The notes under the pieces are model-generated. The model saw only the letters and a program-made list of their open reading frames with translations. It ran no database searches and was not told the DNA's origin. DNA of 64,000 bases from Bugula neritina (taxonomy: Eukaryota; Animalia; Bryozoa). The stretch covers positions 33,045,504 to 33,109,503 of the forward strand of contig OZ037765.1 in NCBI GenBank assembly GCA_964035545.1, in the 5' to 3' direction. The stretch's first letter is position 1; every line of letters begins with the position of its first letter. The translations under genes were made by a program, and so were the position numbers. Positions 11,271 to 56,500 of the stretch are shown in pieces.

Positions 11271-12228
11271 ACTACTTACTGTAGACACACAGACAGACTA
11301 CTTACTGTAGACACACAGACATACTACTTACTATAGACACATAGACAGACTAATTACTGTAGACACACAGGCAGAATACTTACTGTAGACATACATACAG
11401 ACTACTTACTGTAGACACAGAGACAGACTACTTACTGTAGACATACAGACAGACTACTTACTGTAGACATACATACAGACTACTTACTGTAGACACACAG
11501 ACAGACTGCTTACTGTAGACACACAGACATACTACTTACTGTAGACACACAGACAGACTACTTACTGTAGACACAGAGACAGACTACTTACTGTAGACAA
11601 ACAGACAGACTAATTACTGTAGACACACAGACAGACTGCTTACTGTAGACACACAGACAGACTACTTACTGTAGACACACAGACAGACTACTTACTGTAG
11701 ACACACAGACAAACTACTTACTGTAGACACACAGGCAGAATACTTACTGTAGACATACATACAGACTACTTACTGTAGACACATAGACAGACTGCTTACT
11801 GTAGACACAGAGACAGACTACTTACTGTAGACACACAGGCAGAATACTTACTGTAGACATACATACAGACTACTTACTGTAGACACACAGACAGACTGCT
11901 TACTGCAGACACAGAGACAGACTACTTACTGTAGACACACAGACAGACTACTTACTGTAGACACACAGAGAGACTACTTACTGTAGACACACAGACAGAC
12001 TACTTACTGTAGACAAACAGACAGACTAATTACTGTAGACACACAGACAGACTGCTTACTGTAGACACACAGACAGACTACTTACTGTAGACACACAGAC
12101 AGACTACTTACTGTAGACACACAGGCAGACTACTCACTGTAGACACACAGACAGACTACTTACTGTACACACACAGACAGACTACTTACTGTAGACACAC
12201 AGACTGGCTACTTACTGTAGACACTACT
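11271..12228. repeat. 26-bp minisatellite (ACTACTTACTGTAGACACACAGACAG)n
   Basis: Direct tandem copies with minor variants. Confidence 0.95.
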
Positions 12229-18300: not shown

Positions 18301-18690
18301 ATTTACAATTCACTATAAATTGTGGGTATACTTATGCAAAGCCAAATCACCAGATTTCGTACAAATTGAATGGACTTTATTATGGCGAATAATACAAGAA
18401 AGAAAACTGTTTACACTAGTACACACCACACGATTACATAATACAGAGTGATTTGCACACAACTTTTTATTATTAGAACTCGATCCACTCTGCCGGCTAC
18501 GCTGCCTAACTAGCTTCCACTACACATTTGCAGCTCCACCTACTATTTAATTGTTAATCACATTCCATTGGTCAACACGGTAGTGCCATCCGAACAACAT
18601 GATGCTGACTGCATCATGTAACTGTTCGAGATAGAGTTATTCTTTCGATATAAACTAACTGCTTGGGAACACCATACTAAACTCTTTACA
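12355..18690 (-). mobile_element. Ty3/Gypsy LTR retrotransposon with both LTRs, decayed and internally deleted
   Basis: 398-bp TG..CA LTRs at 12355-12752 and 18293-18690, flanked by the TSD ATAA (12351-12354, 18691-18694). PBS TGGTAGCAGCATTGGGAT follows the 5' LTR, and PPT GGAGGGGAGGA precedes the 3' LTR. Fragments of gag, RT (LPFGL, YFDD), RNase H (DTDAS) and integrase lie in Gypsy order. Confidence 0.95.
14246..18235 (-). pseudogene. disrupted gag-pol of the Gypsy element
   Basis: ORF fragments 17885-18112 (gag), 16420-17028 (RT), 15996-16307 (RNase H), 15139-15453 and 14734-15093 (integrase), with multiple frameshifts, stops and deletions. Confidence 0.9.
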
Positions 18691-23347: not shown

Positions 23348-23579
23348 AGAGTCTCAGAATCTGGTTTAGACATTCTGGAGAGAATCCTGTAGACATGGAA
23401 GATGTTTGCTGGGCTGCAACCAAATCATATACTTTGAGTGAAGTGAAGACTCAAGTTGGGAGTTATCAACTCACTCACCTCAAGTTAGAGAAGAAAATTC
23501 CTAAGAATATAGGAGAGATTGCTTCACATGCTGTTTGTTTGGTATTCCGTAATATGACTGACAAGGAGAGTCTGAATAA
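23348..23579 (+). CDS. N-terminal coding exon of the Roco-caspase gene
   Basis: Open frame from acceptor CCAG (23347) to donor AA|GTGAGT, ending in phase 2 as the LRR cassettes require. Confidence 0.65.
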
Positions 23580-26500
23580 GTGAGTATTTAGTTGAGTATA
23601 TCTGAGTCAGACAACTCACACATATTGTATGATTTCAAGATGAATATGTTGATGACTCCTAAAAAGTTGTACTGTACATTATGTAATGCGATATTAAGAG
23701 TTGAATACACAGCAATGATATGATGTATATATTGTAACAATAACTTATATTCTTCTCTGATTGTATGTCTTTATATTGTATTTTTATATTACAGTATTAG
23801 TCAGCTGACTCAGTTAGAGGAACTAGACATAGGATACAATCCTCTCAACACAGTACCAGATGTTGTGTCATCACTCACATCACTCAAACAGTTGTATATG
23901 AGTGGATGTAGAATATCCAGTCTACCTGAGAGGTTTGTGTGTCACATGTTTATTATTTCTTCTTAACATCATACCCATCTCCCTTTAAAATATATTTATA
24001 CATAACTATTAGTATATAAGATATGTACAGGTTATAAATGTGTAGGTAAAAATTTGTATACCCACCTTAAGGTTTTGATAAAATACAATGAGATGGAAAA
24101 GGTGGAGTGCATCATGAATTGAAAAGCCACCCTCTCTCATGAAAAAGTGAATTATAATTTCGTTTTACTACTGTATTGAAATACCACAGTACTCCCTAGC
24201 TATAATGTAAAATAATATTGCTAAGCATTTTGCTAAAGGTTTCATCTGGAAAGAATACTTATAGATATAGAATATTATTGAAGAAAACAATGGTCTATAG
24301 GGGTTTGAGCTCGACAAAGGCTATTGATGATGTTAGGAAGACTATACCCAGTCATAATTGCTCCTGTGCCTCATGTGAATAAGTCCATAGCCCCATTTAA
24401 CAAAAACTCCTTTCATCAGGGATTTTCTCACAGGGATGATGATTAAATTTGCATCAGTTTTATTTTTAAATAAAATAATAGAATTATTTGTTATATAAAG
24501 CGATAACAGCTACTAGTGATATAATTTGTTACTGATCACTATCAAATCAAATGGTATTCATTATTAAATGAAACAAGTTAAGGTAAAATATCATGAGGAT
24601 TGCAAAAATATTTTTGTTTTATTGTTAGAATTTTTCAGGACTGTAAACTGCTGCATGATATTTTATTCTCTTCCTGTTGTAAATTTTTATATCATATTTT
24701 TATATTACAGTCTCTCCCAGCTGACTCAGTTAGAGGAACTAGACATAGGATACAATCCTCTCAACACAGTACCAGATGTTGTGTCATCACTGACATCACT
24801 TAAACAGTTGGATATGAGTCACTGTAGAATATCCAGTCTACCTAGGAGGTTTCTGTGTCACATGTTTATTATTTCTTCTTAACATCATTACCATCTCCCT
24901 TTAAATTATATTTATACATAACTATTAGTATATAAGATATGTACAGGTTATAAATGTGTATGTAGGTAGAATTTTGTACCCACCTTAAGGTTTTGATAAA
25001 ATACAATGAGATGGAAAAGGTGGAGTGCATCATGAATTGAAAAGCCACCCTCTCTCATGAAAAAGTGAATTATAATTTTGTTTTACTACTGTATTGAAAT
25101 ACCACAGTACTCTCCGGCTATGATGTAAAATTTTATTGCCACTAAGTATTTTGCTAAAGTTTTCATGTTGAACGAAGACTAGATATAGGATAATATTAAA
25201 GAAAACAGTGGTCTAGAAGCGTTAACCCTGACAAAGGCCATTGGTGATGTTAGGAAGACTACTCAGTCATAATTGCTCTTGTGCGTCATTTAAATAATTC
25301 CTTAGCCCAATTTAACAAATATCCTTCCCACCGGGTTTTTCACAGGGATAGTGACTATAAAGTTGCATGCATTTTACTTCATAAAAAAACAATGAAATCA
25401 CTTGTAATATGAAGTACTAATATCTACTGGTGATATAATTTGTTATTGATCAAATCGCATTCATTTTATTACATGAAACAATTTAAGGTAAAATATCACA
25501 AGGATTGGAAAAAACATTTTTGTTTTGTTGATAGAGTTTTTCAGAACTATAAACTGCTGCATGATATTTCATTATTTTCCTGATGTAAATTTTTATATCA
25601 TATTTTTGTATTACAGTCTTTCCCAGCTGACTCAGTTAGAGATACTATACATACAACGGAATCATCTCAACACAGTACCAGATGTTGTGTCATCACTCAC
25701 ATCACTTAAACAGCTGGATATGAGTTACTGTAGTAGAGTTGGTCTACCTGAGAGGTTTGTGTGTCACATGTTTATTACTACTTCACAACATCACTATTAC
25801 TACTCTGTAACCTATATTTATACACAACTTATATAGTATATATAATATAACATACAGGATACAGAGTATAGCTATAGTTTTTGTACTTAGCCTGAGTTCC
25901 CTGTGTTAGATAAGGAGCTGGTAAAGGTGCAGTGTAAAAATTGGAAAAACTTTAAACCTCTTCAAATGACTATGTGCAGGATGATGAAAGGAGTTGTATT
26001 ACTTATATATGAATATGTAAGATAGTTTACAATAATGTGTAAAGTTTGGAAAAGATACCCTCTTTCTATATGACCAGAAGCTGAATTATAAATTAGGAGT
26101 TGTATTATTTACATACGAATATTTTGTGTAGTTTAGAATAATTGTATGCATTATATGTTATTAGGAATTAAATATACAGCAATAATGTGGTTTATATTTT
26201 ATATATTACCATTAAATTGTCTGTATGCGTAGGGTCACACAACGCGGGTTTTCTGCATGGGGGTCCAAATTTTAGGGCACCTGTTCTGGGAACAACTTGC
26301 CACACAATGCATGGATTGTGGGTGCGGGAGCTCATTGGCTAACGAACTTGGAGTTTAACATTACTGCTCGCCTACAGACATTTGTTTTTTAAATTTACAT
26401 CATCGGCAAAGTGACTTTCCATATTATAAAAGTGGAAATGAAAACTATATGAAACTGTTTTAATTTAGTTCGATAAAAATTAAACCTCGAATTGAAATTA

Positions 26501-29500
26501 AAAAAGTGTGCTTGCTAAATGGTAATTAGCCAATTACATCAAACCTACACAAGCTTTCTGCACTTCCGTCTCAGCATGTTATCTGCATGGGCACCCACAC
26601 ACAACAGCCCATTTTTGAGCTAGATGGGTTAATTCTCCCTGCATGTTGCCAGCAGGGGTCACCCGCGCCGTGTGGCTCTATGCTAAGCTGACTAAGTAGT
26701 TAGTAATAACTATGTCATAACTCATTATTCTTAGCAGTGAATAGAAAAAAGCTGCCTAAAACCAACCAGCAGCTCTGTGCAAAAACTCTTAAAACTTTCA
26801 TAAATTATACTATGCAGACCTGTTTACTCTGAATACTTTGAAACAAAACAGCATCCTAGGTTAAACACGAATATATATTGAAAACATAGTTTAGCATGTA
26901 TTGAACCAGAACTAGTAACATTCAGTCATGACAATATTGTGTGAAAATTTTACAATCTGAAGTGAATCTGTATTATATTTATGGCATTATATCAAGTACT
27001 ATTATCCTGCTTTATTCAGGATGTTATTTTGACTGATACTCAATATTTCCCGAAAATAAAAACATGTGATATTTGACTCATACTCATATAAGTACTGCAT
27101 GTTATACTTATATTGTATGCAACTTTGTTCTCTTCTTATATTCTGTATATCTTTATGTTCTAGTGTGGATCAGCTGACTCAGTTAGAGACACCAGACATA
27201 GTAGACAATAGCCTCAAGACAGCACCAGATGTTGTGTCATCACTTAAACAGTTGAACATGAATAGATGTGGAATATCCAGTCTACCTGAAAGGTTTGTGG
27301 TCGCATGTGTATCACTACTTCACAACGTAATTATTACCTTCCTTTATAATGTATTTATACACAACTTATAGAATATAGAATAAGTACAGGATACAGGATA
27401 TAGCTTTTTATTCAAACTTTTCAGGCTTAGTCTGAGATTCCTGTATTCTACAATGAAACGATAAGGGTGCAGTGTAAATATTTATAGAGCCACCCTCTTT
27501 CTCGACTCTGAATAGAAATATTGTAGTGAATTTTAGTATTGCATTAGTTAGTTATGTTATATTGAAAGGGTAACTCTATGTCGGACTGCCGCCATTCGGC
27601 CGACAGCTTCATGTCGACAGTATCATGTCATCAGGATGGCCTGATCGTGTTGGCCAATGAAACAGGACTGACAATTGATGAGTAGGCGGAGTTTCAAACG
27701 CGTAGTGGAAGCATGTTAGACAGCTTCATCGGCAGAGTGGATCGAGTTCTAGTAATGTGAAGTTGTATGCAAATCACTCTATATTATGTAATCGTGTGTG
27801 TTAATGTTAGTAGTTTTATTTTTGTATAGTTTGTAACAATAAAGTCTATTGTAATTGTGAGAAACCTGGTGAAGTAGCTTTATATAAGTAGACCCACTAA
27901 TTATATAGTGAATCAGAAATTCACTACGGTGGTGGCAGCGGTGGGATCTTTCTTATAATAAGTGCTCCTAGCCAGGGAGTAAAACAATGGCCGACGACGA
28001 GGACGTGCCCGATCAGGAACCAGTAGTGATGGAGGAGGATGACATAGGCGGCCCAGCACTGCCTATGGACAGGTATCACTTACGTGCTCCCATCATTTCA
28101 GGAGAAGAGGATGTGGAGCAATTTATTACTGAGTTTAGTAATGTGGCAGCCATCTGTCGATGGCCTGCCAGGGTGACTCTGATCTAGCTACGGTTGTGTC
28201 TGACAGGGCCGGCTAAACCCTATGGGATAGGCCAAGATGCTGGTGACATATTTGAAGCATTGAGAGCTCGGTTTAGGTTAACCGCTCGAGATGCTCGCGT
28301 GCAGCTTCAAGGACTTAGGAGAAACCCTAAGACTAACTTGCGAGAGCACGCATCCGTAGTCGAACGACTGACACAAGTCGCGTATGGCGACTTGCCTGCT
28401 GATAGTCGACAGAGCTTGGCACTGGATGCATTCCTCCAGTCTAATAATAACCTCGTGCTAAAGTAACACCTGCTGGTAGGCGAGGTTGATACAATGGAGC
28501 GAGCTCTCAGGCTTGAAAATGCCTATTTCCAAGTCGACAGTACATGCTGTACATGTCGCCACGGTGGCAGCCGACGAGCCGACTAGCTTGACCACAAGCT
28601 TGGTTCGCGAGTTGTTAGCCGAAATCAGGGAACTACGCCAGCAGTCGACAGCTGAACGACCTACCAGGCCGCCATTAGTGGTCGACGGCAAGGGGAACCC
28701 CATATGCTGAGGTTATAGTAGTGTTGAGCACTTCATACAAAGTTGCCCCCATGGTAGAGGAAGGCAGTTAAATGGAAACGGCCAATGGTAGACTCCGCCA
28801 ACCGTGGGCCTCGGTTTAACCCTCCGAGGCCAAGGCCCGAACCCAATGGGGTGAGGAGGCCTCCTTCGCCAGAATGGCAAGCCCCCGGGAGAGTTAGCAG
28901 GCCGCAAAGCCCGCCAAAACCTCCGGCTTGGGCACTCAAAAATTGCTTTGAAGGTTTGCCTGATGAGGGGATGTATGACGCGTGGGAGCATGACAGGGAT
29001 TTTCTTCGGTTGCCCACACGAGCGCAGGTCCGAGCATTCACTCGGCCGCCCGTGTTTGAGCAAGTCTGAGATGTAGCCCACTTGCCCACGCGATGTCGAC
29101 GACTCTCTCGCAAACGGAAAGCACAGGTGCATCCCCAACTCCATGCACATGAGGTGTCACCTCAAGAGACGAACCGCTCAGTGAGCGCCCAGCCATATGA
29201 GACCAGCTATTTCCTCCCCGGTAAACTTGCCGAAAAAGCGGCAACTGTTCTATTAGACACTGGGTATACCAGAAATCTTCTGAGCCGGCGTCTGTTAGAC
29301 ACACTCAGTGCCAGGGACAGGGCTAGCCTGGAACCACATGACGGGGAACACGGCACGTTGGCGGACAGGTCGTGTTTTCTTTTCTATGAGGTAGTAGAGT
29401 TTACTGGTAGAGTTCGTGATCAGGTGATCAGTGAGACCTGTATCGTCAGTCAACTCAAGGAGGATGCCATCTTAGGCATGCCATTTCTGAAGCGACACAG

Positions 29501-32500
29501 GTGCCACATTGACTTCAATAAGTCGGCGGTGGTGGTGGCCGGGCGTGAGCTGGCCTGTGTCGACCGATTTTGCCGGCCCTTGGTGGGGGGAGTGCAAGTG
29601 GTACAGCGCTGCGCTGTACCTGGGCACTCTTGGGCTACAGTTTGTTGCAGAGTGAACTGTAGGGAAATCTCCAAGTTGGAAGTGGTGGAAAGTGCACTGG
29701 GGGGCGTCCAGCTTGCTAAGAGTCTGAATAGACTGGATGAGCGGGGGGAGTTCCTAGTCCAGGGTGTGAATCTTTTCACGGAGCCGGTAGACTTGCTGGC
29801 TGAGTCCCTAGTGGGGAAGTTCCACTCTGTAGAGGAGGAGGATGTCGGCCCGGCTCTGGAAACAGCAGACAGAGGCTGGCGGGTTCCCACTAGGGACGGC
29901 AGAGGGCCGGTACCTGAACATGTAGCAGAGTTGTACAGGGATGCCTGTGAAGGCTGTGAGAGTAAGCGGTAACGCCTAGTAATGGCGCAGTTACTTTCTG
30001 AGTACAAGGACGTGTTCAGCTGCGGCGACCATGACATGGGCCGAGCGAAGGCTGTCTGTCATGAGATACCCCTGGCGGCGGGAACGGTGCCCATCCGGCA
30101 GCCGACCCGCCAGTTAGGTCCTGAGAAGGAAAGGGAAGTGAGCCGACAGGTGCAAGACTTTCTGAATCGGGACCTGATTGAACCAGGCCAGCGGGCCTGG
30201 AGTCTTCCAGTTGACCTGGTTTGGAAAAAGGATGGGAGCTGGAGGTTTTGCGTTGACTCTCACAGGCTGAACAGCACGACCATCAAGGACGCTTACCCTC
30301 TTCCTAGGATCGACGAGTCGCTAGATGCCTTAGCTGGTAGCAAGTTCTTTAGTACGTTGGACTTGTTAAGCGGGTATTGGCAGGTGCCCCTGAGTCCTGA
30401 AGCACAAGACAAGGCCGCGTTTATTACGCGGGATGGGCTCTGGAAATGGAAGGTGTTGCCGTTCGGACTTACGTCCGCACCGGCCACCTTCCAGCGACTC
30501 ATGGAGCAGATCCTGAGTGGGCTGCTCTGGAAGACCTTGTTCATCTATCTCGATGACGTCATTGTCACCTCCCCCGACTTCGACACTCATGTCAGTCGGC
30601 TCAGAGAGGTGTTTGACAGACTTCGAGCTGCTGGTCTGAAGCTCAAGCCCTCAAAGTTTGCGTTACTGCAACAAGAGGTTAAGTACCTGGGCCATGTAGT
30701 TGGTCGAGACGGGATCGCCATCGACCCCGAGAAGGTACGGGCTGTGAGGGACTGGGAGATTCCTGGCGACCTCCCTGAATTGCGGGCATTCCTGGGGCTG
30801 GTAGGGTACTATCGTCAGTACATACCGGGTTTTGCAGGAATTCGGCAGCCACTAAACTGGCTGACAGCAAAGGGAGTGCGATGGCATGGAAGCATACAGA
30901 ACAGCAGGCATTTAACCACCTCAAGGATCGCTTGGTATAGGCGCCCATCTTGGCGTACCCTGACCCGGCGAAAGAATACATTTTGGATACTGATGCCAGT
31001 AACCACAATGTGGTGGCTGTGCTGTCTCAGGTCCAAGATGGTCGCGAGGTGGTGGTAGCTTACTATAGTAAGGCCCTGTTGGCGCCTGAGATGAACTACT
31101 GTACAACCAGGAGAGGACCCCTGGCGGTAGTCAAGGCGGTTAAACACTTTAGACCGTATCTGTATGGGTGTACGTTCAGATTACAAACGGATCATGCGTC
31201 TTTGATATGGCTGTGTCGACGGGTTGAATCATCAAGCCAAGTGGCGCGCTGGCTGGAAATCCTGGCAGAGTTTTCTCATCGGATAGATCACCGACCCGGT
31301 AAGAAACACGGCAATGCCGACGGACTCAGCCGCCACCAGGCAAATGGGTGTAAGCAATGCCAAAATATCGAGCGTAAGGATGGTGGACCCCCCCGCTCGG
31401 ACGTTGAGGAACAGTTGGGGAAAGCAGGTGCATATAGCTGGGAAGAAGGACAACTTCGGTCCGAATCCCCTAAGGAGGCTGTTACCAACCTTCACGCAAA
31501 CCCCACGCTGCTCAGGAACGTCAAAGAGCTGTGTCGGCTCCAAGCTACACTACCAGGGGTGGTAGCCGACCTAGTCTGGGCCAAGAAGGAGGGACGGCAG
31601 ACTAGTAAGACCGAGCAGCAGGTGAAGAGTGAAGAGTTTAGGTATTTCTGCAATTGCTGGGACTACCTCTGGCTTAACGGCGAGGGGCTGTTAACGATAA
31701 CGTTAGCAGCCGGCACCAATCGCCGTGAATGAGAGAGGGTAGTCTGTCCGTCTGCTCTGAGGCGGGAGTTGATCATTTACACCCATAGGCAAGCTCATGC
31801 AGGAGCCAGGCGTGTTACTCAGTGTCTTCAACTCCAATGATTTTGGCCCGGTATTACCCGGGATGTCCGACTCCGGGTGCGGAAGTGTGAGGTATGCCAA
31901 GCTAGTCAGCATGGCCGCTCTACTGATACTGCCGGGAGGCGCTGCCACCATGCCGGTCGTCCGTGGCAGGTAGTTGCTGTAGATCTGCTGGGCCCCATGC
32001 CCACGACAGTCAGAGGTAATAACTGGATATTGGTGTTAACTGACCATTTCACGCAGTGGGCTGATGCACTGGCTATTTCAGATGCGTCGGCACCGACGGT
32101 GGCCAGAGCTTTTGATCAGCAGGTGTTTTGCTATTTCGGCTTGTTAGAACAGATCTACTCTGATCAAAGCGCCCAGTTTCAGTCGCAACTCATGAGCAAT
32201 CTTTGTAAAACGTGGGGGTAAACCAGAGTCGGACGACCCCGTACCACCCGCAAGGGAATGGGGTTGTGGAGCGGAACAACCGGATGCTAATTTACTCACG
32301 GAGAAGCCTGCTTATCGGTAACAGTCAGGAAGAGTGGGACTCGGTGTTGCCGCAAATCATGCGAGCTTACCGTAGTACCCCTCACTCCAGTACGCTGGAG
32401 ACCCCTAATTTTCTCAGAGAAACCAGGGTTCCTGAACTTACCATATTCCGGCTCCAGAGAGCAGCGTCTATGATTACGTTAATGAGCTCGTGAAATGCAT

Positions 32501-35500
32501 GAGGACAGCTCACGAGGTGCTACGTGAGCAGCAGTGACAGGTCAGGAGTGGTGACTCTGACGACCCCCCTTTGTATAAGGTGGGAGACTTGGTCTGGATG
32601 ACCAGTCATTGCCGGCGGCGCGAACAGGCGGCTAAGTTACAGCAAAAGTTTGTGGGTCCACAAGGTGAAACGGTCTGGACAAGTGTCGATCCAGAACGAG
32701 GCACGGCCAAAACTGTACTGGGCGAGCCCTGACGCAGCAGGACAGGCCCCTCCGCTCTAAAAAGCTTGCACGACTCCCTCCTATGAGAGGGCGAGGCATG
32801 GCATATAGAGAAATAGAGGAGGTGCTGCCAGATCAGGAGGGAGAGGCCGACGTGCCGACCGATCCGCCCCGGCCGCCTACACTCCAGGAGGAGGCGACCG
32901 ACACACCGGAAGACCGGTCTGAGCCGGCCCCACCACCAGTGGAGCCAGCCGACATGCCTGTCGCTCCGGATGAGATGGTAATTTCTCAGATTCACGAGGA
33001 AGAGGCAACTAGGGAGGAGCCACCCGTATTAGTTAAATCCCCCCCCCCGTACTGGCGACACCACCGGTGGTGGTATAATCACCAGTACCAGCAAATCCTC
33101 CAGTACAGTTGGAACATAGTCAGCGTACTAGGACGCCACCATCTGATTTAAGAGACTTCTGGTGTGACATGGTCGACATGCTCCGTATTTTATAGCCTGT
33201 CGACTTGTACAAAAAAAGTCTGGGGGCAAGGTAATTGATAGTGGCGGATAGAATAGGTCAGCCGAGGGGTCAGCAGAGCAAAGCCAACTCAATAGCGCAT
33301 GGGGTGGTACATAACCACTCTAGCTGTGAGCGCTCTTTTCAGTTACAACCAGCAAACAGGCAGCACTTCTTTTTGCAGTAAATAAATTTGGCTACTACGA
33401 GCCCTATATAAACAGACAGCGAACATTATGTCTAATGCAGCAACTGTTTTGGAGGGTGAGACTGAAGCTGTGTCTGCTGAGATACAGGCACTACTCGATA
33501 CACCGACAGCAGCATGGGACAACATGTGTCAGAGGAGAGGATTGACATGTTGTCCGACATTCACTTATCAACAGTGTCGGACCAATCGACTACAACGACT
33601 AACCAGACTGTTAAACAAGTTGACATTACTGAACTAACTGGCGGACCGCTTGAATTGCCACAAGCTTTGTTACGGCGTACTACCTGGACAACTAGACAGA
33701 CGAAAACTCTAATACAGGCACTGATAGGGACTGATGACAATAGGCGGTGTGATGAATGCAGACGAACTTTCTCGACTATGAAACAACTCAAAATACACAT
33801 GCCACAACATTTTACTGTAACCTTCTGTCCCTGTGGAGTCCACCACTTCTACAGGGGCGCTATACTGTGACACCAAAGGAATCAGAACTGTTACATCGGA
33901 CACCTATACAAAATTGACGCCGACTCATACACTGAATTTAGAGAGATGATACTGCTTCATGTGACCGACCCAGATCGACGCCAGACGCCACTAGACCAGT
34001 TCCCCGCGACCCGAACAACGGTGGAAAGCGATTCAGACGCAGGCCCCCAGCCTCTGGAGACCACGAGGACAACACCAGCCCCTGAGGTGACGACTCAGCC
34101 TCTCCAAATTCTTGTGTCCCGTGCCGGACGCACAATAGAAGTAGACTCCCCACCCCTGACCACAACTACCTCCTTCTTCCCTAGTCGCCGACAGAAGAAG
34201 AGAAAGAGCCCTAGTGACCGGACTAACAAAAATACTATCCCCGACCAGTCTCTATTGACAGATGTAAAGAAGTTACAGAGGCGTATGGCGTATGTACATA
34301 TATGGAGTGGGTCCTTTCATACGACATCAGAGAATTTACAGTATGGTTGAGCATAACCAACTTTTTAGAGGACTATTTGAAGGCTCTCAACTGAAAACTA
34401 GATGACTTCCGCTGCTGCTTTGCTTCACCGTATTTATTGCTATAGTCAAGCTTTCCTAATCTGTTTCCCTGTGCACTGTTTTCAGTATGAAATTTTGCAT
34501 CATTCTGAAAATGTTTGCATACTAGTTTAATTACACTGTTGGCTTACATTATCGTTTGGTCTTGGATTAAATGTATGTTTCTTTTATAAATTGATGGCAG
34601 ACAGATTTTAACTAAAAAAAATACAAACTTAAGTCTAAAACCTGGTGTGCCCTGTTATAATTAACATATGAAAATAATTGGTGGGGCAAGTTGTACCTGG
34701 TTCAACTTGCCCCACTTCCTGTGTGGTTCAACTGACCTCACACTATCACGGGCTACATATTATTGTCAATATCTGCTGTGAATGAAATATTTCTGCAAGT
34801 TTATGTCATTGTACAGCTTTGAAAGCATGTTGACAATACATGCCTAAATTTATTTGACTGTGCTCTTAAAATTTGAGAAGCCATGTAACTGTTTATGAAA
34901 AATATAAAGTTTTAGTTTGCTCATTTTTCATGCAAAATTGTGAAAAATACTCGCTTGAACCTGAAAACTTCTGCTTGGAGTTTATTTGTTTCTATATATT
35001 TTTATATATTTATATATTTTCTATATTGAAAATATAATCTGACATGTATTAAATTAAAACTGGTAATATTCAGTCTATGAGATAGTGCGTGTAAATTGTA
35101 CAATGTGGAGTATATATGTATTATATTTACTGAATTCATTATATGAGGTACTATTATCCTGCTTTATTCAGGATGTTATTTTGACTGATACTAAATAGTT
35201 TATGAAATACAGAGATGTGATATTTGACTCATACACATGCCAGTATTGCATATTATCCTCATACTTTGCTTTGTTTTAATGCATGTCTTTATATTACAGT
35301 TTCTCCCAGCTGACTCAGTTAGAGATACTAAACATAGGAGACAATACTCTCAACACAGTACCAGATGTTGTGTCATCACTCACATCACTTAAACAGTTGA
35401 AGATGAATAGATGTGGTATATCCAGTCTACCTGAAAGGTTTGTGTGTCACATGTTTATTTTGTTATTTCTTCTTAACATCATAACCATCTCCCTTTAATT

Positions 35501-38500
35501 TATATTTATACATAACTATTAGTATATAAGATATGTACAGGTTATAAATGTGTATGTAGAAATTTGTACCCACTGTAAGGTTTTGGTAGAGTACAATGAG
35601 ATAGAAAAGGTGGAGTGCATCATGAAGTGAAAAGCCACCCTTTCTCATGAAAAAGTGAATTATAATTTTGTTTCACTACTGTATTGAAATACCACAGTAC
35701 TCCCCAGCTATAATGTAAAATTTTATTGCTACCAAGCATTTTGCTAAAGATTTCATGTGGAACGAAGACTAGATATAGGATGTTATTAAAGAAAACAGTG
35801 GTCTAGGGGCTTGAACCCTGACAAAGGCCATTGATGATGTTAGGAAGACTATACCCAGTCATAATTGCTCTTGTGCGCCATTTAAATAATTCCTTAGCCC
35901 GATTTACCAAAAATCCTTTCCACCGGGTTTTTCAAAGGGATGGTGACTATAAAGTTGCATGCATTTTACTCTATAAGAAAACAATGAAATCACTCGTAAT
36001 ATGAAGTACTAATATCTACTATAGTGACATAATTTGTTACTGATCAAATTGCCTTCATTTTATTACATGAAACAATTTAAAGTAAAATATCATAAGGATT
36101 GGAAAAACATTTTTGTTTTGTTGATAGAATTTTTCAGAACTATAAACTGCTGCATGATATTTTATTATTTTCCTGATGTAAATTTTTATATCATTTTTTT
36201 GTATCACAGTTTTTCCCAGCTGACTCAGTTAGAGATACTATACATACAACAGAATCATCTCAACACAGTACCAGATGTTGTGTTATTACTCACATCACTT
36301 GAACAGCTGGATATGAGTTACTGTAGTAGAGTTGGTCTACCTGAGAGGTTTGTGTGCCACATGTGGCACACAAACCTCTCAGGTAGTAATAAACATGGAA
36401 CGGTCTAGACAAGTGTCGATCCAGAATGAGGCACGGCCAAAACTGTACTGGGCGAGCCCTGACGCAGCAGGACAGGCCCCTCCGCTCTAAAAAGCTCGCA
36501 CGACTCCCTCCTATGAGAGGGCGAGGCATGGCATATAGAGAAATAGAGGAGGTGCTGCCAGATCAGGAGGGAGAGGCCGACGTGCCGACCAATCCGCCCC
36601 GGCCGCCTACACTCCAGGAGGAGGCGGCCGACACACCGGAAGACCGGTCTGAGCCGGCCCCACCACCGGTGGAGCCAGCCGACATGCCTGTCGCTCCGGA
36701 TGAGATGGTAATTCCTCAAATTCACGAGGAAGAGGCAACTAGGGAGGAGCCACCCGTATTAGTTAAATCCCCCCCCGTACTGGCGACACCACCGGTGGTG
36801 GTAGAGTCACCAGTATCAGCAAATCCTCCAGTACAGTTGGATTGTAGTCAGCGTACTAGGGCGCCACCATCTGATTTAAGAGACTTCTGGTGTGACATGG
36901 TCGACATGCTCAGTATTTTATAGCCTGTCGACTTGTACAAAAAAAGTCTGGGGGCAAGGTAATTGATAGTGGCGGATAGAATAGGTCAGCCGAGGGGTCA
37001 GCAGAGCAAAGCCAACTCAATAGCGCATGGGGTGTTACATAACCACTCTAGCTGTGATCGCTCTTTTCAATTACAACCAGCAAACAGGCAGCACGTGTTT
37101 TTGCAGTAAATAAATTTGGCTACTACGAGCCTTATATAAACAGACAGCGAACATTATGTCTAATGCAGCAACTGTTTTGGAGGGTAAGACTGAAGCTGTG
37201 TCTGCTGATACAGGCACTACTCGATACACCGACAGCAGCATGGGACAACATGTGTCAGAGGAGAGGATTGACATGTTGTCCGACATTCACTTATCAACAG
37301 TGTCGGACCAATCGACTACAACGACTAACCAGACTGTTAGACAAGTTGACATTACTGAACTAACTGGCGGACCGCTTGAATTGCCACAAGCTTTGTTACG
37401 GCGTACTACCTGGACAACTAGACAGACGAAAACTCTAATACAGGCACTGATAGGGACTGATGACAATAGACGGTGTGATGAATGCAGACGAACTTTCTCG
37501 ACTATGAAACAACTCAAAATACACATGCCACAACATTTTACTGTAACCTTCTGTCCCTGTGGAGTCCACCACTTCTACAGGGGCGCTATACTGCGACACC
37601 AAAGAAATCAGAACTGTTACATCGGACACCTATACAAAATTGACGCCGACTCCTACACTGAATTTAGAGATATGATACTGCTTCATGTGACCGACCCAGA
37701 TCGACGCCAGACGCCACTAAACCAGTTCCCCGCGACCCGAACAACGGTGGAAAGCGTTTCAGACGCAGACCCCCAGCCTCTGGAGACCACGAGGACAACA
37801 CTAGCCCCTGAGGTGACGACTCAGCCTCTCCGTATTCTCATGTCCCGTGCCGGACGCACAATAGAAGTAGACTCCCCACCCCTGACCACAACTACCTCCT
37901 TCTTCCCTAGTCGCCGACAGAAGAAGAGAAAGAGCCCTAGTGACCGGACTAACAAAAATACTATCCCCGACCAGTCTCTATTGACAGATGTAAAGAAGTT
38001 ACAGAGGCGTATGGCGTATGTACATATATGGAGTGGGTCCTTTCATACGACATCAGAGAATTTACAGTATGGTTGAGCATAACCAACTTTTTAGAGGACT
38101 ATTTGAAGGCTCTCAACTGAAAACTAGATGACTTCCGCTGCTGCTTTGCTTCACCGTATTTATTGCTATAGTCAAGCTTTCCTAATCTGTTTCCCTGTGT
38201 GTTTTCAGTATGAAATTTTGCATCATTCTGAAAATGTTTGTTTCTATATTTTTATATATTTGTATACTTTCTATATTGAAAATATAATCTGACATGTATT
38301 AAATTAGAACTGGTAATATTCAGTCTATGAGATAGTGTGTGTAAATTGTACAATGTGGAGTATATATGTATTATATTTACTGCATTCATTATATGAGGTA
38401 CTATTATCCTGCTTTATTCAGGATGTTATTTTGACTGATACTCAATAGTTTATGAAATACAGAGATGTGATATTTGACTCATACACATGTCAGTATTGCA

Positions 38501-44500: not shown

Positions 44501-47500
44501 CCGGCCCCACCACCAGTGGAGCCGGCCCCACCACCAGTGGAGCCAGCCGACATGCCTGTCGCTCCGGATGAGATGGTAATTCCTCAGATTCACGAGGAAG
44601 AGGCAACTAGGGAGGAGCCTCCCGTATTAGTTAAATCCCTCCCCGTACTGGGGACACCACCCGTGGTGGTATAATCACCAGTACCAGCAAATCCTCCAGT
44701 ACAGTTGGAACGTAGTCAGCGTACTAGGACGCCACCATCTGATTTGAGAGATTTCTGGTGTGACATGGTGGATATGCTCAGTATTTTATAGCCTGTCGAT
44801 TTGTACAAAAGAAGTTCGGGGGCGAGGTAATTGATAGTATGCTACCCAGTGGCGGATAGAATAGGTCAGCCGAGGGGTCAGCAGAGCAAAGCCAACTCAA
44901 TATCGCATGGGGTGTTACATAACCACTCTAGCTGTGAGCACTCTTTTCAACTACAACCAGCAAACAGGCAGCACTTCTTTTTGCAGTAAATAAATTTGGC
45001 TACTACGAGCCCTATATAAACAGACAGCAAACATTATGTCTAATGCAGCAAATGTTTTAGAGGGTGAGACTGAAGCTGTGTCTGTTGAGATACAGGCACT
45101 ACTCGATACACTGACAGCAGCATAAGACAACCTGTCAGAGGAGAAGATGGACATGTTGTCCGACATTCACTTATCAACAGTGTCGGACCAACCGACTACA
45201 ACGACTAACCAGACTGTTAAACAAGTTGACATTACTGAAATAACTGACGGACCGCTTGAATTGCCACAAGCTTTGTTACGGCGTACTACCTGGACAACTA
45301 GACGGACGGAGACTGTAATACAAGCACTGAAAGGGACTGATGACAATAGACGGTGTGATGAATGCAGACTGACTTTCTCGATTATGAAACAACTCAAAAT
45401 ACACATACCACAACATTTTACTGTAACTTCCTATCCCTGTGGAGTCCACCACTTCTACAGGGACGCTATACTGCGACACCAAAGGAATCAGAACTGTTAC
45501 ATCGGACACCTATACAAAGTTGACGCCGACTCCTACACTGAATTTAGAGATCTGATACTGCCTCATGTGACCGACCCAGATCGACGCCAAACCCTACTAG
45601 ACCAGTTCCCCGCGACCCGACTGACGGTGGAAAGTGATTCAGACGCAGACTCCCAGCCTCTGGAGACCACGAGGACAACACCAGCCCCTGAGGTGACGAC
45701 TCAGCTTCTCCGTATTCTCATGTCCCGTGCCGGGCGCACAATAGAAGTAGACTCCCCACCCCTGACCACAACTACCTCCTTCTTCCCTAGTCGCCGACAG
45801 AAGAAGAGAAAGAGCCCTAGTGACCCGACTAACAAAAATACCATCCCCGACCAGTCCCTATTGACAGATGTGAAGAAGTTACAGAGGCGTATGGCGTATG
45901 TACGTAATTGGAGTGGGTCCTCTCATACGACATCAGAGAATACACGGTATGGTTGAGCATAACCAACTTTTTAGAGGACTGTTTGAAGGCTCTCAACTGA
46001 AAACTAGATGACTTCCGCTACTGCTTTGCTTCACAGTATTTATTGCTATAGTCAAGCTTTCCTAATCTGTTTCCCTGTGTGTTTTCAGTATGAAATTTTG
46101 CATCATTCTGAAAATGTTTGCATACTAGTTTATTTACACTGTTGGCTTACATTTTTGTTTAGTCTAGGATTAAATGTATGTTTCTTTTATAGATTGATGG
46201 CAGACATATTTTAACCAAGAAAAATACAAGCTTAAGTCTAAAGCCTGGTGTGCCCTGTTATAATTAACATATGAAAATAATTGGTGGGGCAAGTTGTACC
46301 GGTTCAACTTGCCCCACTTCCTGTGTGGTTCAACTAACCCCACACTGTCACGGCTACAAATTATCGTCGATATCTGCTGTGAATGAAATATTTCTGCAAG
46401 TTTATGTCATTGTACAGCTTTGAAAGCATGTTGACAATACATGCCTAAATTTATTTGACTGTGCTCTTAAAATTTGAGAAGCCATGTAACTGTTTATGAA
46501 AAATATAAAGTTTTAGTTTGCTCATTTTTTATGCAAAATTGTGAGAAATACTCGCTTGAACCTGAAAATTTCTGCTTGGAGTTTATTTGTTTCTATATAT
46601 TTTTATATATTTATATATTTTCTATATTGAAAATATAATCTGACATGTATTAAATTAAAACTGGTAATATTCAGTCTATGAGATAGTGCGTGTAAATTGT
46701 ACAATGTGGAGTATATATGTATTATATTTACTGAATTCATTATATGAGGTACTATTATCCTGCTTTATTCAGGATGTTATTTTGACTGATACTAAATAGT
46801 TTATGAAATACAGAGATGTGATATTTAACTCATACACATGTCAGTATACTGCATATTATCCTCATACTTTGCTTTGTTTTAATGCATATCTTTATATTAC
46901 AGTCTCTCTCGGCTGACTCAGTTAGAGAAACTAGACATAGGAGACAATACTCTCAACACAGTACCAGATGTTGTGTCATCACTCACATCACTTAAACAGT
47001 TGAAGATGAATAGATGTGGTATATCCAGTCTACCTGAAAGGTTTGTGTGTCACATGTTTATTATTTCTTCTTAACATCATAACCATCTCCCTTTAAATTA
47101 TATTTATACATAACTATCAGTATAGAAGATATGTACAGGTTATAAATGTGTATGTAGGTAGAATTTTGTACCCACTTTAAGGTTTTGGTAAAATACAATG
47201 AGATGGAAAAGGTGGACTGCATCATAAATTGAAAAGCCACCTTCTCTCATGAAAAAGTGAATTACAATTTTGTTCTACTGCTGTATTAAAATACTCCAGT
47301 ACTCCCTAGCTATAATGTAAAACTCTATAGCTAAGCATTTTGCTAAAGTTTTCATGTGGAAAGAATACTAAATATAGAATATTAATGAAGAAAACAATAT
47401 GGTCTAGGGGTTTGAGCCCCGACAAAGGCTATTGATGATGTTAGGAAGACTACCCAGTCATAATTGCTCCTGTGCCTCATCTGAATAAGTCCATAGCCCC

Positions 47501-50500
47501 ATTTAACAAAAACTCCTTTCATCAGGGGTTTTCTCACAGGGATGGTGATTATAAACTTGCGTCAGTTTTATCTTTAAATAAAATAAAAAAAATCATTTGG
47601 TATATAAAGCAATAACAGCTACTAGTGATATAATTTGTTACTGATCACTATCAAATCAAATGGTATTCATTATTAGATGAAACAAGTTAAGGTAAAATAT
47701 CATGAGGATTGCAAAAATATTTTTGTTTTGTTGTTAGAATTTTTCAGAACTGTAAACTGCTGCATGATACTTTATCCTCTTCCTGTTGTAAATGTTTATA
47801 TTATATTTTTATATTACAGTTTCTCCCAGCTGACTCAGTTAGAGGAACTAGACATAGGAGACAATACCCTCAACACAGTACCAGATGTTGTGTCATCACT
47901 CACATCACTTAAACAGTTGGATATGAATAGCTGTGGTATATCCAGTCTACCTGAAAGGTTTGTGTGTCACATGTTTATTATTTCTTCTTAACATCATAAC
48001 CATCTCCCTTTAAATTATATTTATACATAACTATTAGTATATAAGATATGTACAGGTTATAAATGTGTATATAGGTAGAATTTTGTACCCACTTTAAGGT
48101 TTTGGTAAAGTACAATGAGATGGAAAAAGTGGAGTGCATCATGAAGTGAAAAGCCACCCTCTCTCATAAAAAAGTGAATTATAATTTTGTTCTACTGCTG
48201 TATTAAAATACTCCAGTACTCCTTAGCTATAATGTAAAATTCTATTGCTAAGCATTTTGCTAAAGTTTTCATGTGGAAAGAATACTAGATATAGGATATT
48301 AATGAAGAAAACAATGGTCTAGGGGTTTGAGCCCCGACAAAGGCTATTGATGATGTTAGGAAGACTATACCCAGTCATAATTGCTCCTGTGCCTCATCTG
48401 AATAAGTCCATAGCCCCATTTAACAAAAACTCCTTTCATCAGGGGTTTTCTCACAGGGATGGTGATTATAAACTTGCGTCAGTTTTATCTTTAAATAAAA
48501 TAAAAAAAATCATTTGTTATATAAAGCAATAACAGCTACTAGTGATATAATTTGTTACTCATCACTATCAAATCAAATGGTATTCATTATTAGATGAAAC
48601 AAGTTAAGGTAAAATATCATGAGGATTGCAAAAATATTTTTGTTTTGTTGTTAGAATTTTTCAGAACTGTAAACTGCTGCATGATACTTTATCCTCTTCC
48701 TGTTGTAAATGTTTATATTATATTTTTATATTACAGTTTCTCCCAGCTGACTCAGTTAGAGGAACTAGACATAGGAGACAATACCCTCAACACAGTACCA
48801 GATGTTGTGTCATCACTCACATCACTTAAACAGTTGGATATGAATAGCTGTGGTATATCCAGTCTACCTGAAAGGTTTGTGTGTCACATGTTTATTATTT
48901 CTTCTTAACATCATAACTATCTCCCTTTAAATTATATTTATACATAACTATTAGTATATAAGATATGTACAGGTTATAAATGTGTATATAGGTAGAATTT
49001 TGTACCCACTTTAAGGTTTTGGTAAAGTACAATGAGATGGAAAAAGTGGAGTGCATCATGAAGTGAAAAGCCACCCTCTCTCATAAAAAAGTGAATTATA
49101 ATTTTGTTCTACTGCTGTATTAAAATACTCCAGTACTCCTTAGCTATAATGTAAAATTCTATTGCTAAGCATTTTGCTAAAGTTTTCATGTGGAAAGAAT
49201 ACTAGATATAGGATATTAATGAAGAAAACAATGGTCTAGGGGTTTGAGCCCCGACAAAGGCTATTGATGATGTTAGGAAGACTATACCCAGTCATAATTG
49301 CTCCTGTGCATCATCTGAATAAGTCCATAGCCCCATTTAACAAAAACTCCTTTCATCAGGGGTTTTCTCACAGGGATGGTGATTATAAACTTGCGTCAGT
49401 TTTATCTTTAAATAAAATAAAAAAAATCATTTGTTATATAAAGCAATAACAGCTACTAGTGATATAATTTGTTACTCATCACTATCAAATCAAATGGTAT
49501 TCATTATTAGATGAAACAAGTTAAGGTAAAATATCATGAGGATTGCAAAAATATTTTTGTTTTGTTGTTAGAATTTTTCAGAACTGGATTAGGTATAGCT
49601 TTTAGTTCGTCTAGCATATTTTTATCACATATTTCGTTTCTAGTTTTAGTATCTTTATTAAGTGCGTAACATATGTCGTGTTTCATAGCTATAGCGTCGT
49701 CTCGATCTACCGGTTTACTTCATTTTTTAGGAGTCATATCGTCATTCATACGCTTATCTAATTTAGTACCGGGACCTAAAAAATTATGATTGGGGTAATG
49801 CAATTCAACGGGTAAATTGTTTATTAAATTATTCATTAAACCCGACCCTTTTTTAATAAATGTATTCTTTTTACATCCGCATTGACTGCAATTACCGTAA
49901 CCCATTAGTCTTTTATTTTTACTTTCTCTTTCTCCATAATTGAGAGCTTTTGTTTTAATTTTACACTTACAACAATACATTTATTATAATAAATGGAAAT
50001 AGAAAATCTTTTGTGGAAAAATGAATTTAATCGTAATAATAATCCTTTACTTCCTAAAAGCAAAAGAGGACTTATCGTTGGAAAGTCTGGATGCGGTAAA
50101 ACTACGTTACTTTGTAACTTACTATTACAACCTAATTGGCTCGATTATGATAAACTTATGATTTACGGTAAAAGTCTTTCTAAACCCGAATATATAAATA
50201 TGAAAAAAGCTTTCGAGCTCGGAATAACTAAAAAAGAAATTTTAAATTTCTTTAAAAATAGTGAAACGATAGTAAATTCGGGTATAAACGTAAATCGTAT
50301 TTTAAAAAATTACACTACGGGTAACGGTAATATAAACGCTGAATTTATCGAATCTAGTGACGACGTTTATGACCCTTGTGATAAAGATTTAATAATATTC
50401 GATGATTTAATGTTGGAAAAACAAAAAAAAGGGGCGAAAGTTATTGTACGCGTGGTCGTCATAGCAATGTCGTTTGCTTTTATTTATCGCAAAACTATTT

Positions 50501-53500: not shown

Positions 53501-56500
53501 ATTTTGTAATTAAGGTTTAATTGTTCAAAATATTTGTAAGCTTCAAATAGAAATTGGTATTTCAATAATTTTTTATTTTGCTTTTCGTTCCAATTTTCTA
53601 TTTCAACAAATATGATGCGATGTAGGTCAAATAAATTTATACGTTAAAAATTACATGCAATAGCTGATACATCTTAAAACATGCAGTTGTGACTTCCTGC
53701 CTATATCTGTATTGCATAAAATACTTTTATTGCATTTAATTTTAGTCTCTTCTCACTATGCATATCTTTATATTACAGTCTCTGTCAGCTGACTCAGTTA
53801 GAGATACTAGACATAGGAGGGAATCCTCTCAACACAGTACCAGATGTGGTGTCATCACTCACATCACTTAAGCAGTTGGATATGAATAGTTGTGATATAT
53901 CCAGTCTACCTGAGAGGTTTCTGTTTATTACTATTTTACAACATTGTTATTGCCTTCTTTTAACATATATTTATACACAGCTTATAATATATAACATAAG
54001 ATGCAGTATATAAAAGTTTAGCTCAAACTTTAGACTCAGTCTAAGTTTGTGGAAAAATGCAATGAGATGTGAAGGGCCGAGTGTAATATGATATAAAAAG
54101 TTATCCTATATCGCTAGATAAAGGTGGATTATTATTTTGTGTCTACTGCACTATTGAAATACTACAGGATCTCAGCTATGTAAAATTCTATACTAGGTAT
54201 TCTGCTAAAGATTTCATGAAGAAAGAATATTAGTTATAGAATATTATTAAGGAAAGCAATGACTTATATGAAGTACTGGTACCATCTCACAACTGTATTT
54301 TGTTACTCACTATTATACATCGAGGGATGGTATTTGTATTACTAAAAGAAAGAATTAGGGATGACAATATATCCTGACAATTTAAAATCCATTTACTGTT
54401 TCATTGATAATTTTTTTACAAACTAGGAATCATTGTTATATAATTCTTTATTCTTTTGCTGTTGTATGCTTTGTATTACAGTCTCTCCCAGCTGACTCAG
54501 TTAGAGAAACTAGACATAGGAAACAATCCTCTTAACACAGTACCAGATGTTGTGTCATCACTCACATCACTTAAAGAGCTGAAGATGAATAGTTGTGGTA
54601 TATTCAGTCTACTTGAAAGGTTTGTGTGTCGCATGTTTATTACTACTTCACAATATCATTATTACCTCACCTAGCAGTATTTATATTCAACTTGTTGTAT
54701 CTAAAATATAATATACAGAACACATAGAGTAGCCATATTCTGACTGTCCTGTGTTATACAATGAAATAGTTAAAAGAGTAGAGTGTAATATAGAAATCCA
54801 CCCTTAAGCATGGTCATGGATTAGAGCCAATGCCAGGATATTATAGTGATAAAATATTCAGTCATTTATAAAAAACACAACATATTTATTCTTGAAGTAT
54901 CACGGTGCCGTATATAAAAGTTTATATTTATGCAAGTATTTTGTTAAGCATTTGATAAACATATATATTCCCTAGAGTTAGGGGTACATGACTATGACTG
55001 TTGGTCACAGGTTAATAAATGATGAAATAGTCATAAGAAGAAGTGTGAAATTAATACCTGCAGTAACAAATAGTTATAGCATCAACTAGCTTTATTTGTC
55101 ACCCATTTTAAAAATAAAAATAACAGCCGACTCCCTAATGTATATACTATGTATAGTAATGTGGACTATATATAGTAATGTATACTATGTATAGTAATGT
55201 ATACTATGTATAGTAATGTATACTATGTATAGTAATGTATACTATGTATAGTAATGTATACTATGTATAGTAATGTATACTATGTATAGTAATGTATACT
55301 ATGTATAGTAATGTATACTATGTATAGTAATGTATACTATGTATAGTGCTGTATAATATGTATAGTAATGTATACTATATATAGTAATGTATACTATGTA
55401 TAGTAATGTATACTATGTATAGTAATGTATACTAAGTATAGTAATGTATACTATGTATAGTAATGTATACTATGTATAGTAATGTATACTATGTATAGTA
55501 ATGTATACTATGTATAGTTATGTATATTATGTATAGTAATGTATACTATGTATAGTAATGTATAATATGTATAGTAATGTATACTAAGTATAGTAATGTA
55601 TACTATGTATAGTAATGTATACATAGTATAGTGATGTATACTATGTATAGTAATGTATAATATGTATAGTAATGTATACTATGTATAGTAATGTATAATA
55701 TGTATAGTAATGTATACTATGTATAGTAATGTATACTATGTATAGTAATGTATACTATGTATAGTAATGTATACTATGTATAGTAATGTATACTATGTAT
55801 AGTAATGTATACTATGTATAGTAATGTATACTATGTATAGTAATGTATACTATGTATAGTAATGTATACTATGTATAGTAATGTATACTATGTATAGTAA
55901 TGTATACTATGTATAGTAATGTATACTATGTATAGTAATGTATACTATGTATAGTAATGTATACTATGTATAGTAATGTATACTATGTATAGTAATGTAT
56001 ACTATGTATAGTAATGTATACTATGTATAGTAATGTATACTATGTATAGCAATGTATACTATGTATAGTAATGTATGTATGATATGTAAAGTGACAAAAT
56101 GATCTACTAAGTCAGTAAACTATTTTATAAACTATGTGTATTTATATAAAGCTTTAACATTGCCTTTTTCTTAAGTAGTATAATTGGCTGAATTGCAAGA
56201 TTAGTTACTGGTGATTAGTTTACTGGCGTATTTGTATTTATATTTATATAGTATTCTGAGCCTCTCAAACCTCCAACATCTGGATATCTCTAATGAAACC
56301 TTTCAGGACAATCAGGAAACTTCACACCAGATCACATGTTTACCAGATAACTTCAGCCAATTATCTAGCTTGATATATCTTAACCTCAGTGGAAATGATA
56401 CCCTAAAAGCTCTAACACCAGAGATAGCTGACATGCCTCTATTAATGTTAATAACTACTCAGGGTTGTGAGTCATTGACTTCACCACCATATGAAGTTTG

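Follow-up and report, generated by a model that had tools for sequence, protein, structure and literature searches.

What keeps most of a repeated exon almost unchanged, silent sites included, while a few of its codons differ from one copy to the next? The question is raised by a 64,000-nucleotide stretch of the genome of the bryozoan Bugula neritina (assembly GCA_964035545.1, contig OZ037765.1, positions 33,045,504 to 33,109,503), which we call the window; positions are counted from its first letter unless marked otherwise. The window holds an array of fifteen leucine-rich repeat (LRR) cassettes, named E1 to E15. Diversifying selection on the LRR binding face, together with concerted evolution limited to the exon, is supported as the best explanation of their pattern. 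The whole reading that we favour, in which the cassettes are same-phase exons of a gene for an LRR-Roc-COR-caspase protein, with a homogenised scaffold, positive selection at nine codons and a role as a sensor, seems to us quite probable.

The two scaffold strings of the cassettes occur 15 times each on the + strand between 23.8 and 54.6 kb, with 0-2 and 0-3 mismatches respectively and a chance expectation of about 0.01. An earlier note on this DNA had placed the feature at 23795-54619, which is exactly the start of the first exon and the end of the last. All 15 units are bounded by AG upstream and GT downstream; twelve measure 138 bp, two 129 bp (E4 and E10) and one 144 bp (E9). The reading phase is the same in 15/15, with 1 nt of a split codon at the start and 2 nt at the end, so that any cassette can follow any other in frame. 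Each one translates into two LRRs of unequal length (24 + 22 residues), with the consensus LSQLTQLExLDIGxNTLNTVPDVVSSLTSLKQLxMxxCGISSLPE, and is matched by Pfam LRR_4 and LRR_8 (33 and 32.4 bits on one exon). The LxxLxLxxN/CxL core and the Pfam LRR profile assign them to the 'typical' 23/24-residue class and, in sequence alignment, the cassette is in register with the 23-residue LRRs of SHOC2 and of Leptospira LIC proteins, including LIC11098.

Motifs of this scaffold cluster at C1:32.79-33.67 Mb (~0.9 Mb) of the 216-Mb genome, and a profile search of 16 stretches of this cluster gave 73 cassettes, those of the window included. AG/GT boundaries are present in 71 of them and an open frame in 72, and 63 are intact 138-bp exons. 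Among these 63, exactly nine codons (9, 11, 13, 14, 16, 34, 36, 37 and 39) have an amino-acid entropy over 1.5 bits, and every other codon stays below 1 bit. The first five correspond to positions 3, 5, 7, 8 and 10 of the first LxxLxLxxNxL, and the last four to positions 5, 7, 8 and 10 of the second LRR core. Codon 14 takes 13 different residues and codon 37 takes 11; the 63 cassettes have 59 distinct signatures of nine residues, in which G, D, N, S, R, T, K, Y, H and W are frequent. In solved LRR proteins the LxxLxLxxN segment makes up, on the concave face, the beta strand and the ascending loop, which would place the nine variable codons of each cassette on the concave beta-sheet face of a solenoid. 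An AlphaFold model of one cassette alone, made with the 63-cassette alignment, predicts strands at 9-11 and 32-34 and a helix at 17-25; it agrees with the LRR fold, yet with a predicted local distance difference test score (pLDDT) of 64 it is too weak to count as evidence. The residue sets listed in the earlier note were reproduced exactly (Y/R/D/Q/S/N/W/G before N, G/H/Y/R/S/D before C, Y/D/N/K in LxM, E/I/T/K in LExL), and so was the occurrence of multi-base codon changes, the codons before N being TAC, CGG, GAC, CAG, TCC, AAC, TGG and GGG. The note had also confined the variation to the x positions of LxxLxLxxN/C; this describes the nine codons, but codons 1 and 2, at the start of the exon and outside that segment, vary too.

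Amino-acid variation at these codons exceeds silent variation. In a tree-independent comparison of all pairs, 12 concave codons chosen a priori gave a nonsynonymous diversity (piN) of 0.318 and a synonymous diversity (piS) of 0.209, a ratio of 1.52 (bootstrap 1.29-1.83), and family-wide the ratio was 1.96 at the nine hypervariable codons and 0.56 at the scaffold. Recent duplicates were represented by 12 independent pairs in which both 250-nt flanks are each less than 15% diverged. Here the nonsynonymous divergence (dN) of concave codons was 0.206 against a synonymous divergence (dS) of 0.056 (Fisher, p = 0.0013) and a divergence (K) of the flanking introns of 0.058 (344/5892; p = 1e-19 against concave dN); concave dN is then 3.7 times concave dS and ~3.5 times the adjacent neutral intron DNA. 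In the scaffold dS was 0.054 and dN 0.029, with a dN/dS ratio (omega) of 0.5 and dN under the intron rate (p = 1e-4). Neither scaffold dS (p = 0.9) nor concave dS (p = 1.0) differed from the introns. These results bear out the proposal of diversifying selection on a recognition surface: of the two outcomes that the earlier note had named as fatal to it, a dN/dS not above 1 at the x positions and variation no more clustered than in the flanking intron repeats, neither was found.

Since the silent sites of the hypervariable codons change at the intron rate, a mutation hot spot is excluded as the cause. The same result speaks against targeted mutation or somatic diversification, in which the cassettes would be templates or targets of hypermutation or copy-choice, as in the variable lymphocyte receptors (VLRs) of lampreys. 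Such a process is suggested by changes that are multi-base and sharply localised, and by a cassette layout and LRR type that superficially resemble VLR donor cassettes. However, ordinary splicing suffices for exons with canonical splice sites and matching phase, and the differences between cassettes are present in the germline assembly and in independent DNA runs. We consider this possibility very improbable.

The scaffold follows another regime. Across 62 cassettes its third codon positions are 0.94 identical pairwise, whereas the value for introns at -100..-31 is 0.32, where 0.31 is the random baseline; in comparison with genes 0.5 Mb off on the other strand, third positions are 0.95 identical and upstream introns again 0.32 against 0.31. 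The near-invariance at synonymous sites described in the earlier note is thus real but not strict, as ~16 synonymous variants occur among the 15 exons. Scaffold dS plateaus at 0.05-0.12 as the introns climb to the random-alignment level of 0.39-0.41. This short-term neutral accumulation with a long-term ceiling is the signature of concerted evolution; constraint on synonymous sites was ruled out as the cause, because scaffold dS equals intron K in recent pairs. Homogenisation probably works through short conversion tracts or the shuffling of exons, and reaches no further than the exon with its immediate flanks, the only homologous stretch.

Could concerted evolution and relaxed constraint account for the pattern with no positive selection? 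The x positions would then drift, while conversion would unify the rest and shuffle old neutral variants into recent duplicates. The four-gamete test is failed by 35% of informative site pairs, and at depth concave dN (0.35) is not above the saturated intron divergence (0.39 raw), two results that count for drift and against selection. Conflicts between exons and introns favour it as well: E1 and E2 have the same entire LRR-A signature, yet the introns pair E1/E2 with E7/E8, and E6 and E9 are separated by 10 exon-site differences and a 6-bp indel, with a visible recombination break adjacent, beside an intron with 4 differences in ~535 bp. A PHI-like test of whether incompatibility within the exon depends on distance gave no significant result (p = 0.25) and is uninformative on recombination inside 135 nt. 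Differences between recent duplicates were probably imported in part by short gene-conversion tracts. However, drift predicts piN = piS in the x codons, where a ratio of 1.5-2.0 was measured and the bootstrap interval lies above 1, and conversion, which only shuffles variation, is unable to produce piN > piS. Conversion alone would also bring ~10 synonymous imports to the concave codons and ~27 to the scaffold, and fewer, 4.1 and 17, were observed (each p ~0.03). With the 3.7-fold excess of concave dN in recent pairs added, we hold relaxed constraint to be an unlikely account and maintain diversifying selection at the nine codons.

Codon site models, run with our own GY94 implementation on a fixed IQ-TREE topology, also favour selection. 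M2a was preferred over M1a with 2dlnL (twice the log-likelihood difference) = 178.7 and omega2 = 5.6 for 23% of sites, and posteriors near 1 fell on the nine hypervariable codons and on codons 1 and 2, where a switch between the serine codons AGT and TCC makes up part of the signal. With separate trees for the two exon halves M2a was still preferred (2dlnL 102 and 40), and with the window's own exons alone 2dlnL was 34.3, with sites 1, 2, 9, 14 and 37.

To which gene do these cassettes belong? Most likely they are consecutive same-phase exons of one large gene at ~23.4-61 kb (Table 1). Upstream of the array lies an exon whose terminal 2 nt complete one codon with the first nt of E1. Downstream, the acceptor at 56251/56252 opens a large exon in a reading phase equal to that of the cassettes, and on this phase and adjacency the array appears to be joined to it. 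Directly after Roc, residues 340-405 of this exon match PF16095 COR-A (38.3 bits, cut-off 35.3). Pfam Roc itself scores 21.9 bits, below its cut-off of 27; the exon nevertheless aligns to Chlorobaculum tepidum Roco (3dpu, 6hlu) and to LRRK2 Roc with GxxxxGKT and DFGG matched, GQTMSGKTS being paired with GDGMAGKTS and DFGGHE with DFGGQE. A Roc with P-loop and switch II motifs followed by COR agrees, by sequence, with a ROCO protein, and the homologues carry PF08477. Further on, two open reading frame (ORF) pieces match Peptidase_C14 (PF00656) with 34.4 and 47.9 bits (cut-off 21.4), and their SHG and ACR align to SHG and QACR of caspase-2 p18, the catalytic His and Cys, so that the predicted caspase has an intact His-Cys dyad. 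The ORF 60902-61054, a candidate small p10 subunit, resembles by eye the C-terminus of the annotated homologue P0007 and has no Pfam match. In the ORFs of the gene Pfam gave no match to NACHT or NB-ARC. The putative protein would then comprise an LRR solenoid, at least 30 repeats long, followed by a Roc-COR GTPase and a caspase. In the database the nearest matches are hypothetical proteins of Bugula neritina, one of them annotated with caspase, Roc and COR; the nearest that bear a name are 'MFHAS1 homolog' entries, including those of Watersipora. P0001-P0007, the annotated homologues, are fragments in which the cassette array is absent.

Table 1. Features of the LRR-Roc-COR-caspase locus in window coordinates
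Feature	Position	Strand	Remarks and evidence
Exon upstream of array	23413..23580	+	In-frame ORF, GTGAGT donor; RNA-like contigs X1 and X3
E1, LRR cassette exon, 138 bp, two LRRs	23795..23932	+	AG/GT; RNA-like contig cover, joint at 23929/23932
E2, LRR cassette exon	24711..24848	+	AG/GT; RNA-like contigs; Pfam LRR_4 and LRR_8
E3, LRR cassette exon, QxNHL / CSRVG type	25617..25754	+	AG/GT; RNA-like contigs
E4, LRR cassette exon, 129-bp variant, three codons fewer	27164..27292	+	AG/GT, phase
Ty3/gypsy-like long terminal repeat (LTR) retroelement remnant, GC-rich, in intron after E4	27618..34517	+	Protease-like, reverse transcriptase and RNase H ORFs
E5, LRR cassette exon	35300..35437	+	AG/GT, phase
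E6, LRR cassette exon	36210..36347	+	AG/GT, phase; retroelement fragment 36396-38240 just beyond donor
E7, LRR cassette exon	38550..38687	+	AG/GT, phase; opens block 38538-43801
E8, LRR cassette exon	39466..39603	+	AG/GT, phase
E9, LRR cassette exon, 144-bp variant, two additional codons past Cys	40375..40518	+	AG/GT, phase
E10, LRR cassette exon, 129-bp variant matching E4	41934..42062	+	AG/GT, phase; retroelement copy 42388-46120 next
E11, LRR cassette exon	46903..47040	+	AG/GT, phase
E12, LRR cassette exon	47820..47957	+	AG/GT, phase; unit 98.2% identical to E13 unit
E13, LRR cassette exon	48737..48874	+	AG/GT, phase; identical to E12, youngest duplication
E14, LRR cassette exon	53779..53916	+	AG/GT, phase
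E15, LRR cassette exon	54482..54619	+	AG/GT, phase
Large exon: ~3 further LRRs, Roc GTPase, COR	56252..58281	+	Pfam, alignment; donor GTGAGT at 58282 inferred
Caspase large subunit, two ORF pieces (59801-60031, 60068-60370)	59801..60370	+	Pfam, alignment

Sequencing runs were compared over 22600-27500. Two runs have the behaviour of DNA, with coverage of exons as well as introns, and in two RNA-like runs the coverage is limited to the upstream exon, E1-E4 and one high-copy intronic repeat. Joints in the RNA-like contigs coincide with the predicted donor (23929/23932) and with acceptors situated 7 nt ahead of the CAGCTGAC motif; X1 and X3 cover 23413-23580 but not the flanking intron, and a loose contig end marks 23413. 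The 30 nt of that loose end, upstream of 23413, have no match in the window, and the contig may derive from a paralogue. Among the short assembled contigs one joint skips E2, and since 7 of its letters do not match E3 it comes from a paralogue. In this sense, the RNA-like contigs support exon boundaries and not a full transcript.

A decaying or artefactual array, that is, dead and non-coding exon copies spread with a retroelement or expanded in the assembly, might be suspected from the large retroelement insertions between cassettes, from the identity of E12 and E13, and from the few broken cassettes among the paralogues (one stop codon, two without AG). Against it, AG/GT is kept in 71/73 cassettes and the frame in 72/73, the scaffold has an omega of 0.5 with dN under the intron rate, RNA-like contigs lie on exons and not on introns, and the two DNA runs cover the region. 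We give it hardly any weight and continue with a coding array. The apparently inactivated paralogous cassettes are L038:4876-5016, L035:475-612, L042:469-606 and L038:1985-2125; one has an in-frame stop, two have no AG acceptor and one is strongly diverged, which indicates birth and death of cassettes.

The array is built of ~915-bp exon-plus-intron units and of larger blocks, the introns being repeated as well. The stretches 46886-48669 and 47803-49586 are 98.2% identical, and 23783-29031 and 38538-43801 are 94.3% identical. Growth would proceed in two ways, through tandem duplication of ~915-bp units and through the duplication of a block of several units in which a retroelement was already present. 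Indeed, the retroelement copies after E4 and E10 were duplicated along with the cassette block, so that the element is older than that duplication. Spacing differs among paralogues: at L038 (C1:32933216-32934016) three cassettes are only ~330 bp apart, where the spacing is ~915 bp for the window and ~620 bp elsewhere among the paralogues, so the intron of the repeat unit varies greatly in length between genes while the exon stays constant.

Several mobile and repeated elements lie in and around the array. One Ty3/gypsy-like retroelement, with 52-55% GC in a host genome of 32%, is present in four copies or fragments (27618-34517, 36396-38240, 42388-46120 and, on the - strand, 14137-18607); its stretches 32666-34517 and 36396-38240 are 97.6% identical. 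These GC-rich blocks were considered as coding exons of the gene and ruled out as retroelement remnants. The intron between E13 and E14 contains the ORFs 49993-50574 and 51232-52008. The former has a P-loop and faint AAA/nSTAND3 matches and exists in dozens of copies with 82-92% identity on many contigs; it was rejected as part of the gene for being a dispersed multicopy element, and is assigned to a mobile element, as yet unclassified, that carries a P-loop NTPase. The intronic repeat at 24240-24403 and 25224-25387 reaches a word depth of tens of thousands to ~120,000 in the two DNA runs and of several hundred to ~1,250 in the two RNA-like runs, with many contigs ending at its edges; it is probably a very high-copy element similar to a short interspersed nuclear element (SINE) or a miniature inverted-repeat transposable element (MITE), carried in cassette introns. 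Long minisatellites are found at 55143-56076 (19-bp units), 7927-8186 (14), 9004-9757 (40), 11271-12224 (26) and 61366-61589 (14). The 19-bp array has 49 copies and takes up the greater part of the intron that separates E15 from the Roc-COR exon. A direct repeat of ~1.07 kb, 85% identical (3239-4307 and 62944-64000), flanks the whole locus at both ends of the window.

The gene is one of many. At least 134 candidate Roc-COR loci were found in the genome, with E <1e-140 for each of the 64 scored. Identity to the locus of the window is 80% or more in eight, and all eight lie in the C1 cluster. Two of them, C1:32864993-32866990 and C1:33040333-33042318, have one in-frame TAG each and are possibly pseudogenes, or the TAG may lie in an intron. 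Caspase-domain matches are similarly numerous; among the Roc-COR loci listed, at least 25 are followed by such a match at a distance of 1-4 kb, downstream and on the same strand. As a lead only, the annotated Bugula protein has as its neighbours in the Atlas MFHAS1-like clusters and bacterial Roco ones, and no caspase is listed for any of them. No paper on bryozoan Roco-caspase genes was found in the literature searched, although one may exist.

Receptors engaged in arms races, such as plant R genes and VLRs, characteristically show diversifying selection on their concave LRR face. Like the LRRs of plant nucleotide-binding LRR receptors (NLRs) and receptor-like proteins and of animal NLRs, the cassettes have hypervariable solvent-exposed x positions in xxLxLxx with dN/dS above 1, and the family shares with NLRs the clustering of genes, birth and death, gene conversion or unequal crossing-over, and the logic of sensor, nucleotide switch and death effector. 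Unlike in NLRs, the switch is a Roc-COR GTPase instead of a NACHT/NB-ARC STAND ATPase, and the caspase is fused instead of being recruited via CARD or death-fold adaptors. The VLRs of lamprey and hagfish resemble the cassettes in that the scaffold is invariant and the concave residues vary, with G, D, N, S, R, Y and W abundant among them. VLR cassettes, however, serve as donor segments that are not spliced but copied, in somatic cells, into a gene that is incomplete, whereas those of Bugula are ordinary germline AG/GT exons, with no sign of somatic assembly in the DNA runs, and so fall outside the VLR type. The order LRR-Roc-COR without a kinase is that of MFHAS1/MASL1 and other animal LRR-Roc-COR proteins, and the 23-residue LRR type is that of SHOC2, LRRK2 and LRRD1. 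MFHAS1 is a single-copy vertebrate gene for which, to our knowledge, no hypervariable LRR face has been reported; the likeness to it is by sequence only, and the bryozoan family differs in its at least 134 candidate loci, its cassette exons and its C-terminal caspase.

The closest known parallel is found in the exon-shuffled LRR-ROCO genes of brown algae. In Ectocarpus and Saccharina these genes carry one LRR per 72-bp exon in a single shared phase, have evolved by tandem duplication and shuffling, show four concave sites under positive selection and LRR exons that are spliced alternatively, and form a clustered, expanded family for which an immune role was proposed without functional proof (PMC3341825, PMC11378527). 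The bryozoan gene likewise has an N-terminal LRR array followed by Roc-COR, short same-phase exons, a clustered and expanded family and positive selection on the concave face. It differs in its exon of 138 bp with two LRRs (24 + 22), instead of the algal 72 bp with one, which sets it apart from the 72-bp exon type, and in continuing into a caspase where the algal proteins are LRR-Roc-COR only. As the host is an animal, the likeness is probably convergent.

Under the interpretation that we prefer, exon-limited homogenisation between cassettes and between paralogous genes would keep the scaffold near-identical, synonymous sites included, while positive diversifying selection would drive amino-acid turnover at nine codons of the LxxLxLxxN/C segment in each cassette. 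The concave face may bind variable non-self or altered-self ligands, and binding may be relayed through Roc-COR, acting as a switch or dimeriser, to the fused caspase. The family could thus act as one-piece cytosolic immune, cell-death or allorecognition sensors, a role to which the architecture and the evolutionary pattern point. Several considerations weigh against this interpretation. The model of a single-transcript gene is deduced from exons, the RNA evidence consisting of short assembled contigs; the RNA status of these contigs is itself a guess, and near-identical paralogues can cross-map. The sole three-dimensional model is of one cassette alone and of low confidence (pLDDT 64). The codon model is our own implementation on a fixed tree and not PAML or HyPhy with GARD, and codons 1 and 2 score as selected though they lie outside LxxLxLxxN. 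Recombination is rife; it inflates tree-based site tests and may import ready-made differences into recent duplicates.

A further reading goes beyond the sensor role: same-phase cassettes might be used combinatorially, through regulated exon skipping or ongoing germline or somatic exon exchange, to give colony-specific Roco-caspase repertoires that would serve as determinants of colony fusion or rejection, or as a quasi-adaptive pathogen sensor. We regard this as a long shot. If it were true, the family would supply the long-sought self/non-self determinants of bryozoans, and a nucleotide-switch receptor with a built-in executioner protease.

We know of no report of concave-face diversifying selection in ROCO proteins other than those of brown algae. 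The same signature is now seen in an animal, and the contrast is unusually high, with nine fast codons in a 138-bp exon that is frozen elsewhere. If our interpretation is true, there is in Bugula neritina a large family, as yet undescribed, of receptors that sense, switch and kill in one piece and do not belong to the NLR paradigm. The family would also offer a clean natural system in which to ask how a single exon can undergo both concerted evolution and diversifying selection, and what the LRR domains of ROCO proteins bind, a question shared with LRRK2 and MFHAS1.

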